This document shows, piece by piece, positions 11,178 to 44,130 of a DNA stretch of 64,000 nucleotides (position 1 is its first letter; every line of letters starts with the position of its first letter). Both the position numbers and the translations under genes were made by a program. The notes beneath the pieces were generated by a model. That model saw only the letters and a list, made by a program, of their open reading frames with translations. It ran no database searches and had not been told where the DNA came from. Source of the DNA: Lepidodermella squamata (taxonomy: Eukaryota > Animalia > Gastrotricha); assembly GCA_047495785.1 (NCBI GenBank), contig JBLDXI010000015.1, forward strand, positions 310,001-374,000, written 5' to 3'.

Positions 11178-11751
11178 TAAAATGACTGGCAATTGTAATT
11201 ATCCTCTATTGCAAAAATGCAATCAGACTAACTATATCACGCACTGCGGGAATATTCTAATATGGAAACTTGGAAAATTCTGGTTAAATAATATTTGCGT
11301 CTTGCAGAGCGTACTTTTATTCATAGATCTATAGAGCCGGATTCCAAGAGGATGGAAATTGAGCGAGTTTGCATTATAGTTTCAGAAGAGCTTTTATGCA
11401 AATTCGGGGCACACTCGAGAGGTTCTAAATTTTTCAACTTTGGCTCACAGCGACTCGTTAATTAACGGTGAGGAAAGCTGAAATTGTTTAGCGGACTGTT
11501 TACCGTCAAAAAAACCGCCGAAGGTTAGTTCTCCGGCGTCCACAAGACCATGAATCACAAGACGTCCAGGTGAGGCCGCTTTTCGACCTGTCCTAAATTA
11601 AATGTGCTAAATCTACTCGGCAGCAGTAGACACTGATTGGTCACGATATTATTGGAAGACTGTTTGATCCTGTTAAATAAAAATTCGAGGACTCTGGAGA
11701 CGGACGCGACTGCCGCTCACGAGGGACTGAAAACTGAAAAGCTTATGTAGT

Positions 11752-11860
11752 CGAAAAAAATAGCACCTACACCGTGCCGCACGCCGTAGTGCGACCGTAG
11801 CAACACCGTACTTTTGAAATAGCACTTATAAGCGCAGATAGCACTTTCAGATAGCACTTT
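11752..11860. repeat. Left terminal motif array of the YR element
   Basis: CCGT(A/G) motifs at 11772, 11784, 11795 and 11806; ATAGCAC at 11760, 11819, 11838 and 11851. Confidence 0.75.
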
Positions 11861-12082
11861 TAGATTGCATTAGGATGAAATTTCTAGAAAAGCATGACAA
11901 ATACTCCTTTCTCCTCGAAAAAGATTTATTCTTTCATATCTTTTAAAACAATTCACCATTTAAAACACAGAATAACTCTTCAGCACAATGCAACAAATAA
12001 CAAATAAATTTCTCAAATCAATAAAGCTCTGAATAAAGTACAAGTTCTCAATTGGTTCGCTTGGAGCGAACGATATGGAATA

Positions 12083-14400
12083 TCACTTTTTCGGAGGTCT
12101 TCCGCGCCGTGTGCCAGTAGAACCACTGGACAATGAAATCAGTGAATTAGCAGAAGCGCTCCTGGAATCGCGACTGGAACTTCTTGAACTAGAAATCCCC
12201 CTCTCAGATTCCTCCGTCGACACAGAACCGGCCAAATTTTTCCGCGGTCTACCTCGCTTTGCGGCAGTTTTGACTTTCGGAATCGATTTTTCGTCACTCA
12301 ACTCAGCATCTTCACTCTCATCAGCAGACTTTGCTGACCGAGTTCTGCGACGTGGATAATTCATTGCTTCGCTAATCAGTCCTTCGTCAGAGGTATTTCG
12401 GCAGTTCGGTTTCGCGATTTTCTTCGTTCGCGACGATGTTTGACTAGAAACTGAGTCCTTCTCAGCCTCGGACTCGGCGTCAGTTTCATCGAAGTGATAA
12501 CGCGTTGTCATAAATGAAAGCTCACGAGTTGCCATCGTTTCTTCGATGAAATGGCCCATCTCGGCGTGAGTATCAGGTGCCATAGCAAGTTCGTAAAACT
12601 TACGACCAACGCCAGCGCTAATAAGAAAAATACTTTATAAGCAAGATAACACAAGCGGAAAGATTCACCTGTGGACCATGACTTTGTTAAACCACTTTAA
12701 CTGCATCTCATCTTTGCAGGTGTGGGCAAATATAGTCTGGCAGTGTTGGCGAAATTCGGTGAAGCCGAAGTGCTTGTCCCTGTATGTCTTCTGAAACACG
12801 TCATTGCATATGATTCCAAGTTCTTCGGACGTCAAAGCCGATCCATTAGGTTTTAGAAAAAGGCGTTCCTTGTCGCTCAAGCGCTGAGGTCGGTAGCCTT
12901 CAAGATAAGTCCTCAAATGCGAGTGCAATTTGTCAGATATATTGACAAATCCGTCGTTGTATGTCGCCGCTTTTTGATCAGCAACATGAACCAAAAAAGT
13001 CTCGTTATCAACCTTTCGCGCCTTCAGAAATTCACCAACTTGCATCAGCGTCAGAGCACCAGGTCTAATCATGCACCTAAGTGCTAGACCGAAGGCAACG
13101 TAGGCCACAAAAGTCTTGAAGTCTTCGAAGTTTAATGCCCTCTTGGACATAAGTTTTCCGGCTTTATCGCACAGCGAGTCAAAAACAGTTGATACCTCTG
13201 AGTAAAGAGGAAACTTGCCACTATGCATTAATTCGCTCAGCTTCACTCTACGGTGTGCGTCGTCTAGCTTGCAGCCCCGCGAGAAGGCAGTATAAGCATT
13301 CTTCAAATAAGCAATGAGCTTCAGGCGTTTACGATCTTCATACGGCAGATTATCGCCCAGTTCAATAAACTGCAGGAATTCGATGAAGGCGCCACACATG
13401 CCTTTCTTTGTGCTGTAAGTGACCTTTTTATCAAAAGCTTTCTCTAGAGCCCTCCAACCTTGCTCGGAGTAAATCGACTCGAGATAGTCAAAGCCACATG
13501 CTTTGATGATGTTTCGAACGTATGAAACAATTTTCTGCACAGTTGAACTGGCACTGTTCGCACGGCTGGACAGCTGGTTGTTATGCGAGTCATCAAACCT
13601 ATCGCATATAAGGTCAACTTCGCTCTTAACACTCTTCTCCGTCAGAGGATGAACGCGAGATACCGACGCGATATTTTGCCCGTGATTGTTGTTGACTGTG
13701 ACGGACACAGCTGGCGTTGGAATTGCAGGCGTAGACTTCCCAGCTGACCCCGGCTGATTTGCTCCGTAATGCTTAAGGCGGGCTTTTCTTGTTGCCTCAG
13801 ATAATGCCACCTTAATCTCAGCATCGGTTCGATCAACGTGAGCGAAGCAGGCCCGAGGAGATGACAAATGTTTGCGCAAAACAGTAGTATTGCTCAACTG
13901 TTTGTGGCAATCCGGGCAGTTCCGACGAAGACCGACGTGACGTTTCCTAGTGCCGTTAGTTTTCTCGCGCAAGAATCGCCCAAATTGTCTCTTTTGCAGA
14001 CTGCAGTGATGACCAGTTTTGTTAGACTCAGCCCTGGATTGAAGCGGTGGAATGGCATTTAAACTCGCTTGATGGGGAATAACAGGGTTAGTAACAAGCT
14101 GCCCTTCCCGACGATTCGAAATATTGATAACAAGAACCGTTGAGGGGTGGATGAGCTTTGCAGCTATTTCTAGATCTGCATCTGACTCCAAGGAGATTAA
14201 ATCACCATCAGAATCTGTTTAACGAATTAGTTTTCCTAGAACTAGCTCATTGCGAAAGTTGAATACTCACCCCAAGTAAGCTTAAAAGAATCAATATCGA
14301 AAGTAGTTCTCACGGCGTTCTTTAGATGCTCGAATGATGCGCTTTCAAGGGAGGTTATTCGTGTATTTCCGTTGTGTTTCAACTTTGTGTATAAAAACAT
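12083..14400 (-). CDS. PB1 + zinc finger + tyrosine recombinase + AT-hook protein (~736 aa, 3 exons)
   Basis: Exons 14400-14271, 14214-12669 and 12617-12083 (GT-AG introns of 56 and 51 nt) give 2211 nt in one frame. YR catalytic motifs: IRPG (R), VADQK (K), TEFR (R), MVH|SAGVGRKFY (H, Y). N-terminal PB1 OPCA motif FKLTWDSDGDLISLESDADLE; CPDC..H finger; C-terminal KRGRPRK and RRGRPPKK. Confidence 0.88.
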
Positions 14401-14499
14401 TCTATAATGTAGTAGATCAAAGATATTTATCAAAGAAAATCACATTTATATTCGCTTTTGCCAAGCCTTCGCGCCTCAAACTCTCGCGGCGCCTCTTGC

Positions 14500-15785
14500 T
14501 TAGATGGTTTTCATTTTGGCCAAGCAACTTTGCAGAGTTAGATCTCCAAAATAGTCTTCGTACTTATACCGCAACTTCGCACATGCGTTGATGAAATTCC
14601 CTTCAGTTAGATGCAATTTTTGTCTGACCAGCAAGTTAGCAATTCGTTGAAGACGACGAAGTTGCCCACTCGTAAACTTACCAGGGTGTTCCACCTTATC
14701 TCCTAGAAGTAGCACGGGCTTCGACCGGGTGCGACGTGTCAGGTAGCTAAAGCAATTGAAGTCATTTAGGTAACCTGCGAAACTGATGAATCTTACCTGC
14801 ACGGTGTCAGAGCAGTTTGATCTTGCTGCCTAGAAGTTGAAGGAGTTTCAAACGATACTCTTCTTTTCGACGAACTTCGGGGCGTCTTCCGCCTTTCTTC
14901 ACGGTCTGGAGACAACGAAGGCGATGCCGTAGAAGAAACATCCGATTGCGCAGAAGAAGTATCCATGGAGGAATACGATGATGTTGAGAGAGACCGAGAT
15001 CGTGATCTAGATCTCACTCGCGACCGCTTTGAAATGATAGGCGACGGTGAACGCGCAGCCGATTTGGATCGTTGTTTTCTCTTTCGTTCATTTGAAACAT
15101 GTTCGTGACTTCTGGCACGGTGTCGGGGAGCAGCCGGAGTAGTATGTTTTCGTGAACAGTAGCCACCATCAGCACCAGGTGGCGGATGAATTGGCTGCTG
15201 AGCTAGTTGAACCAAATGCTGTGGTGCAAGTTGCTGCGCTGGCTGTTGAACAAACTGCAGTACTGGTTGCTGCTGGGCCGGTTGCTGAAGTTGCTGCAGG
15301 GATGCAAGTTGCTGAGCAGGCTGTTGAACAAACTGCAGTACTGGTTGCTGCTGGGCCGGTTGAATTTGTTGCGGAGCTGTTTGCTGCTGAGCAGGTTGCT
15401 GAACTGGTGGAACAGGAGGTGGATCGACAGGGATAGCACCACCTAAAGCTGCGACCATGGTGGCTAAATTAGCATTTTCAGTCGCCGGGGTTGATTGAGC
15501 ACCTGCGATTGGAAGCCCGCGAGGAGCAGGACTATCCTCGACTACAATGATAATTTCCACATCTCTAACTTCACAGATGTAGCGAATCATGAGCTCTATG
15601 TCGCCGTCCGACATTAGCTCTACTCGATGATGATTGAACTGCGCATAAAACTTCAAGGGAGTGCCCTGATCTAGAGAGTGGAGGATCCGAAGAGATTCCT
15701 CAAAATTTACGAAATCAGTTTCCGTAATTGGGAAGAAACGCAGTTTCTGCTTGTAAGCAGAAAAACCCAGATAGTTGAACTCCAT
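14500..15785 (-). CDS. PB1-like + Q/P-rich + RS-rich + putative Myb/SANT-like protein (~411 aa, 2 exons)
   Basis: Exons 15785-14797 and 14746-14500 (50-nt GT-AG intron) give 1236 nt in frame. N-terminal LKFYAQFNHHRVELMSDGDIELMIRY..VEIIIVVE resembles PB1; C-terminal FTSGQLRRL...LTLQSCLAKMKTI resembles a three-helix DNA-binding domain. Confidence 0.75.
15200..15400 (-). repeat. 78-bp coding tandem repeat (QPAQQQPVLQFVQQPAQQLA)
   Basis: ggctgttgaacaaactgcagtactggttgctgctgggccggttg occurs at 15241 and 15319. Confidence 0.85.
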
Positions 15786-16130
15786 AATCGCAAAATCGCC
15801 TAAAATGGATACAGGTTAAGCAAATGATTATGAAAGAATGGTTTCATTGTGATAAGATACTGGTTTCACCATTTACACCTCACACCTGACGAAAAGCTAT
15901 TGACTTCCGGTAGGAACATGTAACAGTTGTGCTAGTTGAACTCCGAAGGTTGAAGCCGGCGCGCGGAATTTAGTCACGCGGGCGGATGAAGGCCACAATT
16001 AATTTTTTTACTTTTTATTACTATTATCATTTCCAATTTATTATAATATGTTTTTATCAATACCAGAGCCGATTGCCCCGCTTTTAACGCGCATGAATTT
16101 AATATTGGGGTATGCTTGCGCGCTGTTAGG

Positions 16131-16244
16131 ACTCACCGTAGCACCGTAGCACGAGCTTGCGCACCGTACTGCTACCTAATAGCACTCACCGTAGCGCTGC
16201 CGTAGCAAAACCGTAGAACTGTTATCTGGGTGCTATCTTATTCG
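16131..16244. repeat. Right terminal motif array of the YR element
   Basis: CCGTA(G/C) at 16136, 16144, 16164, 16189, 16200 and 16211; ATAGCAC at 16179 and its inverse GTGCTAT at 16230. Confidence 0.75.
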
Positions 16245-16988
16245 TATAATGACATGCCGACACGCGAGATAGTGAACATTAGTCCATTTTCTGGCCGAAC
16301 GCTGAACAAATCTTTCTTCAGATTGTTTGATTCTTTTATTTCAAATTAAAAAAACGCGGAAATTATGATGAAACGAAACGACGAATTCATGGAATGCACG
16401 ATTTTTATTAGCCCATATTGGACCCTTTAATCCTGAAAGCCGGTATCAGGCATTCAATCACTATTGTGACTAGAATCATGGCGAAAGATGCGCGTGTTAG
16501 GACACGAAATCTTCGGCCGAATTATTCTCACGCAGTGCTTCTTGCTACCTTTATGGTGCGCTATTTTCCACTTCGACGCGCAGAGATATATTTCATATTA
16601 TTCAAATCAGAAAAATTGATGGTGTTTTGTACGGTTCGCTGTTAGTTGTTTCAATGTTTTATTGCTAGATAAAAGTCGTTTAAACAGCCACGAAATATTT
16701 ATTACGGACAATGAATGAATTCTCTGTATTTAGTACAAATAGATTGATTCCATTTCACTTTGTTAATTGTTAATTGTAATGATTACCATTGTTTCTTACC
16801 GTGAGATAAAAAATCGCATTGATATCTGTTCACGATCATCATGGTGATTTTCAATTTTGAAACGTTAAACACCGGCGTTTTACCATTAGTTGTTTAGCCC
16901 TAAACATCGGTGTTCAGCTATTAGATTCAGAAATTTACCATGGCGATCCCGAACGGACTTATATCGAATTGATTCCATTTTCTTGACG

Positions 16989-43734: not shown

Positions 43735-44130
43735 TTGTTAGTTTTTCGTCGTTTCGTCGTTTCGCCACTTCGTCATCTTATACAAAAAACTGACTGAAAG
43801 AAAAAAATTGGGTAAAAGTGGATTCGAACCCGGGACCACTGGGTTTTGACGCACAAGGCGAAACCACTGAGCAATAGTGCTGGGTCATGGTAGTCGTTCG
43901 GCATTTTTGTATACTAAACGAACGCTACACTTTTGTTTTTTGCTTTTTGCAAATCGTTTTTTGCCGATTGCAGATAGAAAGCCTCCTATTATTGTATAGT
44001 GGCTCAAATCCATGGTTCTTATCCTTACTGTTCCGGGATCAAATCCTCCTTTTACTCCCTTTTTTCGTTTCGTAAGTTTTTTTGTAAAAGATGACGAAGT
44101 GACGAAACGACGAAGCAACGAAAAAAATAA
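43735..44130. repeat. Palindromic element with outward-facing tRNA-like (Pol III A/B box) arms
   Basis: Imperfect ~150-bp inverted arms. The left arm on the minus strand has tgctcagtgg and ggttcgaatcc followed by a T-run; the right arm has tgtatagtgg and gggatcaaatcc followed by a T-run. Confidence 0.65.

Follow-up and report, generated by a model that had tools for sequence, protein, structure and literature searches.

The 64,000-nucleotide stretch analyzed here (positions 310,001 to 374,000 of the forward strand of contig JBLDXI010000015.1 from the gastrotrich Lepidodermella squamata; hereafter the window) carries on its minus strand an element of about 4.5 kb, located at 11748 to 16250 with boundaries placed to within 2 to 4 nt. 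We consider it probable (about 80%) that this element is a recently mobile, autonomous tyrosine-recombinase DNA transposon that is Crypton-like in its action and represents an undescribed family. The two longest open frames of the whole window lie side by side on the minus strand and belong to the two genes of the element: gene 2, whose predicted product is a tyrosine recombinase with an N-terminal PB1 domain, and gene 1, a partner gene located upstream of it. The original prediction, made from the DNA sequence by itself, had described a two-gene element without a reverse transcriptase. The stretch between the mapped ends indeed contains only these two genes, and Pfam searches together with a reading of the open reading frames (ORFs) inside the mapped 4.5-kb insertion revealed no reverse transcriptase, RNase H, DDE or other enzyme.

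The insertion and its ends

Mobility was assessed with the assembled DNA contigs of one public sequencing run (X1). One contig, with a depth of 55, joins position 11747 to position 16251, skipping 4503 nt with "AA" in between, and corresponds to the empty allele. Since one sequenced allele lacks the element, the insertion appears to be polymorphic and to have moved recently. The element interior is represented by a single contig at a depth of about 60, and this pattern of contig depths fits a hemizygous, low-copy insertion. Other contigs skip 12870 to 14155 and 12104 to 12869, indicating that internally deleted copies exist, and 13 contigs are less than 95% alike to the stretch, pointing to diverged copies. 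A search for copies and empty sites had been proposed as a check on the original prediction; on the contigs of this one run it returned an empty site as well as deleted and diverged copies, and the suspected recent activity is thereby backed by the empty-site contig and the internally deleted copies. We also observed that summed contig depth in X1 peaks at 287 in the interval 16201 to 16400 of the window, across and just beyond the 5' end, compared with about 60 to 100 elsewhere; either the flank or the terminal array may be repeated in the genome.

The ends had initially been placed at 11752 and 16244. These positions stand as the outer edges of a 16-nt inverted repeat, but the empty-site contig moves the limits of the insertion itself outward to about 11748 and 16250. 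Read along the gene strand, which is the minus strand of the window, the 5' end consists of flank, the six-mer ATTATA (16245 to 16250), the first 16-nt core arm (16229 to 16244) and an array (16136 to 16216) of six TACGG-core motifs. Five of these motifs are exact copies of CTACGG, all in one direction and with 11-nt spacing among the first three, and one is a further TACGG core. The 3' end begins with an accessory region (11768 to 11870) that holds three GTGCTAT motifs and four TACGG-core motifs (two exact CTACGG at 11784 to 11800 and two looser), in the same direction as the 5' array. It is followed by the inverted 16-nt arm (11752 to 11767), AC and TACATA (together 11744 to 11751), and flank. 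Three matches to the arm were observed in the window where 0.21 were expected by chance, and none of 100 shuffles reached three; the third, at 44119, is unpaired, carries two mismatches and was taken as a chance occurrence. Of the 21 CTACGG matches in the window, 7 fall inside the two terminal stretches, all on one strand.

These terminal sequences recur in relatives of the element. In the related locus L002, 20 of 22 bases are identical at the 5' terminus and are followed by TACGG motifs, in a flank that is unrelated and next to a recombinase that is only 44% identical. The 3' end of locus L006 contains the composite ACGGTG, three bases, GTGCTA and then TTTCG, as in the element. Cis sites so conserved beside proteins so diverged indicate, by sequence comparison, that the terminal arms and arrays are functional sites.

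The empty allele also allowed the two junctions to be compared with the target. The sequence is GTC-TTCATA-AGC at the empty site, GTC-ATTATA-arm at the 5' junction and arm-AC-TACATA-AGC at the 3' junction. The 5' six-mer ATTATA is identical in L002, and the 3' six-mer TACATA differs from the target TTCATA by one change; the two junction six-mers match each other at four of six positions.

The recombinase gene and its PB1 domain

Gene 2 was predicted to consist of three ORF pieces joined across two GT-AG introns, and both the coordinates and the junction peptides proved exact. Splicing of 14400-14271, 14214-12669 and 12617-12083 on the minus strand yields 2211 nt encoding a 736-aa protein whose sole stop is terminal. 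Exon 1 (14271 to 14400) encodes the first half of the PB1 domain (aa 1 to 43 plus one base) and is followed by intron 1 (14215 to 14270; 56 nt, phase 1, GT..AG). Exon 2 (12669 to 14214) encodes the second half of PB1 with its acidic OPCA motif, a basic stretch, a C2HC finger and, at 12671 to 13639, the core-binding domain and most of the catalytic domain. Intron 2 (12618 to 12668; 51 nt, phase 2, GT..AG) interrupts the frame after the His558 codon plus two bases, and exon 3 (12083 to 12617) supplies the catalytic Tyr567, an acidic and Ser-rich tail, two RGRP AT-hook cores and the stop codon.

We compared the introns with those of six related loci from metagenome and Logan contigs. Intron 2 was found in all six, with position, phase and GT..AG ends unchanged and lengths of 44 to 60 nt, and in each case splicing restored the motif H-[ST]-x-x-V-G-[RK]-K-[FY]-Y, which is otherwise out of frame. 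The claim that the second splice supplies the catalytic tyrosine is thus matched in every relative of the set. Intron 1 splits the N-terminal domain at phase 1, as do introns at the same position in L002 (47 nt), L003 (52 nt) and L005, whose lengths range from 47 to about 60 nt. The related proteins P0007 and P0018 read continuously across an apparently equivalent position. In one diverged copy represented by X1 contigs, the differences, including a 9-nt deletion, are concentrated inside intron 2. The support for the predicted splicing of gene 2 is thus comparative and comes from its relatives.

The structural identity of the gene 2 protein was addressed with an AlphaFold2 model of aa 236 to 558, which reached a predicted local distance difference test score (pLDDT) of 92.8. 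All top 50 rows of a Foldseek search of the PDB were Cre, XerA/D/H, lambda Int, Tn1549 Int, IntI or close relatives, with an E value of 5e-5 against Cre. VIA-align gave Z scores of 12 to 13.9 over 250 to 274 residues, covering both domains (model residues 5 to 323). ESM Atlas neighbors of the model were Xer-type clusters with TM scores of 0.59 to 0.70, and recombinases of Preplasmiviricota viruses were also among its structural neighbors. At the level of a predicted structure, these comparisons settle that the gene 2 protein has a Cre/Xer-type two-domain fold made up of a helical core-binding domain and a catalytic domain, as the original prediction had anticipated.

The catalytic residues could be placed within this fold. 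R427 (codon 13064-13066), K458 (12971-12973), R532 (12749-12751) and H558 (12671-12673) are encoded by exon 2 and Tyr567 (12593-12595) by exon 3, all on the minus strand. The first four sit in motifs conserved in the family, namely, IRPGA (R427), QK..NDG (K458), F-x-F-x-x-x-R (R532) and W-x-N-x-x-M-x-H (H558), and R, K, R, H and Y are conserved throughout. K458 lies in a beta-hairpin between two modeled strands (model residues 214 to 219 and 230 to 235). H558, the last residue of the model, aligned in VIA-align with Cre 315 and lambda Int 333, which we take to be the third catalytic position, nine residues ahead of the tyrosine. Tyr567 follows H558 by exactly nine residues, and the same distance separates the third catalytic position from the catalytic tyrosine in Cre and lambda integrase. 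The catalytic set of R, K, xxxR, H and Y that had been read from the sequence was accurate down to its "xxxR", since the residue at the usual histidine position is Thr529.

Outside the modeled region, the C2HC finger, with the spacing C-x2-C-x12-H-x6-C, occupies aa 143 to 166 (13847 to 13918) and lies, like a conserved basic stretch, upstream of the core-binding domain; it is weakly similar to the finger of the pogo-derived protein POGZ. The RGRP AT-hook cores are at aa 680 (12245 to 12256) and aa 730 (12095 to 12106), where the Pfam AT_hook match is weak (E = 0.98). The finger and both AT-hooks had been noted originally. Taken together, the order of modules in gene 2 is shown to be PB1, a basic stretch with the C2HC finger, the core-binding domain, the catalytic domain (R427, K458, R532, H558 and Y567) and two AT-hook cores. 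In L002, the recombinase tail (L002:4080-4400) apparently consists of repeated short exons of ~120 nt that encode similar Ser/Arg-rich peptides and are separated by near-identical short introns, which suggests exon duplication in that sequence.

The most unusual of these modules was identified by profile comparison. The spliced N-terminus (82 aa) matched Pfam PB1 (PF00564) with 36.2 bits (E = 6e-9), above the curated cut-off of 23.6 bits, whereas unspliced exon 1 scored 12.6 bits; the proposal that the first splice builds the PB1 OPCA motif is borne out by this difference. An acidic OPCA-type motif, D-S-D-G-D-L-I-S-L-E-S-D-A-D-L-E, spans the splice, and K6 and K8 lie in the first strand. PB1 domains that combine an acidic OPCA-type motif with a first-strand lysine are of the type able to pair head to tail. 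The spliced N-terminus of L005, the closest relative, also reached 36.2 bits, above the cut-off, and P0007 gave a weak match. Known PB1 proteins are signaling scaffolds, kinases and transcription regulators. The PB1 domains of p62, aPKC, Par6 and plant ARF/Aux-IAA proteins resemble the N-terminus of the element's protein in their Pfam match, OPCA-type motif and strand-1 lysine, but in the element the domain sits on a recombinase. Full-text literature searches retrieved no paper tying PB1 to Crypton, DIRS, Starship or any recombinase, transposase or transposon.

The partner gene, the family and known systems

Gene 1 lies directly upstream of the recombinase gene, with 100 nt between its end and the start of gene 2. 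It is also encoded on the minus strand, and its two exons are separated by a 50-nt GT..AG intron (14747 to 14796); splicing creates a 411-aa frame without an internal stop. Exon 1 (14797 to 15785) encodes an N-terminal domain of ~85 aa (15525 to 15785), Q/P-rich repeats (15178 to 15398) and an Arg/Ser-rich stretch, and exon 2 (14500 to 14746) supplies the stop codon and, before it, a small C-terminal domain that is helical and bears the conserved signature FGD..T..S...K. In L002 and L003/L004, the region upstream of the recombinase shows this domain order as well, at 19 to 26% identity. Exon 2 aligned with the ORFs that immediately precede the recombinase gene in these relatives (L002 and L003), and an ORF resembling the C-terminal part of gene 1 lies ahead of the recombinase in L009 and perhaps also L007. 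The partner gene is thus conserved, in its upstream position, in at least three other lineages. A lookup of the gene 1 C-terminal domain in the language-model Atlas gave no match, nor did an 87-aa gene 1 query in a wider protein search. The Q/P-rich repeat at 15178 to 15398 is encoded by five tandem copies of a 39-nt unit, and one X1 contig skips 77 nt within it (15235 to 15313), so the number of repeats varies between copies or alleles.

The family to which the element belongs is small. Among 1.84 billion protein clusters we found 43 unnamed representatives, and word-indexed protein searches retrieved an identical set of five unnamed proteins whether the query was a single sequence or a profile. 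No relative was found among the JGI metagenome contigs and IMG/VR viral contigs searched. With no Pfam entry and so few representatives, the family would be missed by standard annotation. A distant branch, represented by the 607-aa proteins P0023 and P0031 at 20 to 27% identity, differs in its N-terminal region, which is also longer, and is accompanied by other neighbor genes (locus L008, the 7-kb contig of P0023).

Several of the related contigs carry traces of other transposons. A Tc1/mariner-like transposase (L001:1003-1957, minus strand) truncates one relative on its 5' side, and a MULE-like fragment (L006:98-391) does the same to another, which indicates that the family resides in transposon-rich eukaryotic DNA in metagenome samples. 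An ORF at the start of the first of these contigs (L001:55-396) ends in an AT-hook-like GVGRPRKY that resembles the recombinase C-terminus and, from this likeness, may be the tail of a second, upstream copy of the element. Three contigs of ~4.5 kb from relatives were considered as possible circles, and this was rejected because they had no terminal overlap and contained other transposons and unrelated flanks.

The nearest published elements in terms of overall organization are the Cryptons, of which we considered CryptonF, S, A and I (Goodwin 2003; Kojima and Jurka 2011, PMC3212892). Like these, the element is eukaryotic and a few kilobases long, has a tyrosine recombinase as its sole enzyme and no reverse transcriptase, and carries an intron-containing gene; a circle-and-reintegrate mechanism is proposed for both, and both have non-autonomous deleted derivatives. 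Animal Cryptons have been described as having neither terminal repeats nor a C-terminal domain (PMC3212892), and Cryptons generally as having 4- to 6-bp direct repeats and no inverted repeats (PMC3212892; restated in PMC13465315). The element differs from published Cryptons in its 16-nt inverted arms, accessory-motif arrays, PB1 domain, C2HC finger, AT-hooks and conserved second gene, and none of 40 members of its family matched the Crypton-derived Pfam profile DUF3504. By these published descriptions and the DUF3504 profile, the family departs from the Cryptons described so far and is probably an undescribed one. This accords with the earlier suggestion of a possible new lineage with a PB1-recombinase fusion, for which the PB1 threshold passed in both the element and L005 and the negative literature searches also speak.

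Other tyrosine-recombinase elements of eukaryotes are more distant. DIRS, Ngaro, PAT, VIPER and Starship share with the element the presence of a tyrosine recombinase in a eukaryotic mobile element. Compared with DIRS, Ngaro, PAT and VIPER, however, the element lacks reverse transcriptase, RNase H, split direct repeats and long inverted repeats; unlike Starships, it measures 4.5 kb rather than tens to hundreds of kilobases, resides in an animal genome and belongs to a family in which none of the 40 members matched DUF3435, the profile of the Starship "captain".

Resemblances to well-characterized recombination systems concern fold and site architecture. The element shares with Cre-loxP, Flp-FRT and Xer-dif the two-domain fold (Z 12 to 14), the R/K/R/H/Y residues and, as predicted for its joined ends, an arm-spacer-arm site. 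It differs from them in its animal host, its PB1, finger and AT-hook modules, the Thr in place of the second His and its non-identical target sites. Lambda Int and the Tn916/Tn1549 integrases, with their Xis proteins, resemble the element in having extra DNA-binding parts, accessory-site arrays and a second small protein; Tn916 also has non-identical coupling sequences, comparable to the junction six-mers of the element, and Tn1549 Int is a structural match to the recombinase model (Z about 12). There is nonetheless no detectable sequence relationship, and PB1, the C2HC finger and the AT-hook are eukaryotic module types. The roles that we tentatively assign below to the partner gene and the arrays are suggested by likeness to lambda and Tn916.

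Alternative explanations and a proposed mechanism

A number of observations weigh against the reading of the element as a recently mobile, autonomous transposon. The empty site is represented by one contig, whose shorter side measures only 30 nt, and this contig derives from a diverged haplotype with 10 differences in about 420 nt of flank. Among the sequencing runs searched with the stretch there was no RNA run, the only match being the DNA contigs of one run. Pfam found no recombinase family in the 508-aa exon of gene 2 and, over 40 family members, returned two weak Phage_integrase matches (best E = 0.005); the family profile, searched against PDB sequences, likewise retrieved no recombinase and only weak zinc-finger matches. 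The residue three positions before the second catalytic arginine, usually the second catalytic histidine (His II), is Thr529 in the element and Thr, Ser or Asn in all relatives, while Cre and lambda Int carry a histidine at the matching position; given Thr529, recombinase activity is assumed. The homologous N-terminal domain of L002 and L003, which keep intron 1, has decayed past detection by Pfam PB1, so the family does not depend on the acidic motif. For the gene 1 N-terminus, a model built from four sequences reached a pLDDT of only 58, with a helix-strand-strand-helix-strand order as in a beta-grasp fold, and PB1 chains made up 9 of the 34 top Foldseek rows at E values of about 1. An Atlas lookup that placed a PB1 cluster first, at 0.85, provides a lead, and a PB1-like or beta-grasp nature of this domain is at best weakly indicated by the models. 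Finally, the circle, the lox-like junction, the binding to arm sites and the PB1 pairing discussed below are all steps that we infer.

The alternative that best survives these observations, although improbable, is that the element is a recently dead copy, either because its recombinase is inactive without the second histidine or because the family relies on the enzyme of another element. Thr529 and the failure of any RNA run to match the element would be expected in that case. However, Thr, Ser or Asn occupies this position family-wide, whereas the remaining catalytic residues and the long open frames persist at identities of 33 to 70%, a combination that suggests purifying selection on a presumably working enzyme, and the empty-site polymorphism argues for recent movement.

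A further possibility, to which we give appreciably less credence, is that the element is an integrated episome or a small virus-like circle that is mainly extrachromosomal, like the yeast 2-micron plasmid with its Flp recombinase. The lox/FRT-like site that its joined ends would form and the presence of Preplasmiviricota recombinases among its structural neighbors are compatible with such an origin. Yet genes for replication, a capsid or partition are missing from the element, IMG/VR yielded no relative, the contigs of relatives show unrelated flanks rather than overlapping termini, and the interior depth of about 60, compared with 55 at the empty joint, corresponds to a single allele.

It is also very improbable, and slightly more so, that the 5' end of gene 2 has been drawn incorrectly, such that the PB1 exon is a separate small gene or a pseudo-exon and the recombinase starts inside exon 2. 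Although no RNA run matched the stretch and L002 and L003 have no Pfam-recognizable PB1, the PB1 score rises threefold on splicing, and the domain is complete only once the two exons are joined. A split in this phase is also seen in L002, L003 and L005, and P0007 and P0018 run through the apparently equivalent position of the intron.

Least probable of all is a domesticated host gene pair, in which an old recombinase was co-opted and became fixed and immobile at this locus: both frames are intact, the second catalytic histidine is replaced by Thr and Crypton recombinases have repeatedly been domesticated in animals to give DUF3504 genes (PMC3212892), but the empty allele and the internally deleted and diverged copies in run X1 argue against a fixed gene, the arms and arrays are conserved in relatives amid unrelated flanks and beside other transposons, and R, K, R, H and Y are all retained.

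For the element as a mobile transposon, we propose a mechanism in which the recombinase would join both ends and release a circle. The junction of this circle would read arm-ACATTATA-arm, that is, inverted arms around an 8-nt spacer, similar to loxP and FRT, both of which consist of inverted arms around an 8-nt spacer. The circle would then re-integrate at sites resembling the spacer. The assembled contigs of run X1, which include the empty site, yielded no junction of such a circle. On this proposal, the 5' six-mer would be the element's own and the 3' six-mer that of the target with one change; crossing over within a non-identical overlap of 6 to 8 nt, followed by separation of the heteroduplex by replication, could produce the observed junction pattern. 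The coupling sequences of Tn916 provide a precedent, in that strands segregate after crossing over in a non-identical overlap. This model of the junctions is a proposal that draws on one insertion, one contig and a diverged empty haplotype.

Accessory functions may be distributed over both proteins. The CTACGG arrays could play the part that arm-type sites play in lambda; either the recombinase, through its finger or AT-hook regions, or the gene 1 protein, through its helical C-terminal domain, would bind them. The PB1 domain of the recombinase, with its beta-1 lysine and acidic motif, might drive head-to-tail pairing between recombinase subunits in the synapse. Alternatively, it could pair with the putative beta-grasp domain at the N-terminus of the gene 1 protein, and the latter would in that case assist or direct recombination; such a PB1-PB1 contact between the products of the two genes is plausible. 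Extending this, we raise very tentatively the possibility, which we hold to be rather unlikely, that the element is a eukaryotic counterpart of bacterial integrase-plus-directionality-factor systems, in which a PB1-PB1 contact between the recombinase and its partner would assemble or steer the synapse on the CTACGG arrays and the lox-like core. If true, the element would give animal cells a site-specific recombination system of their own, one that is self-contained and switchable by a protein.

Among eukaryotic transposons, the tyrosine-recombinase DNA elements are the class about which least is understood, and we know of no animal member whose ends or recombination site have been defined or whose mechanism has been demonstrated. 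The family described here would make such a mechanism testable, since it offers mapped ends and a target site, a predicted lox-like junction, candidate accessory sites and two proteins with intact frames as its machinery. If a recombinase uses a PB1 domain, this would be a novel means of assembling or controlling the synapse, and an animal-native recombinase with a compact site could serve as a tool for genome engineering.

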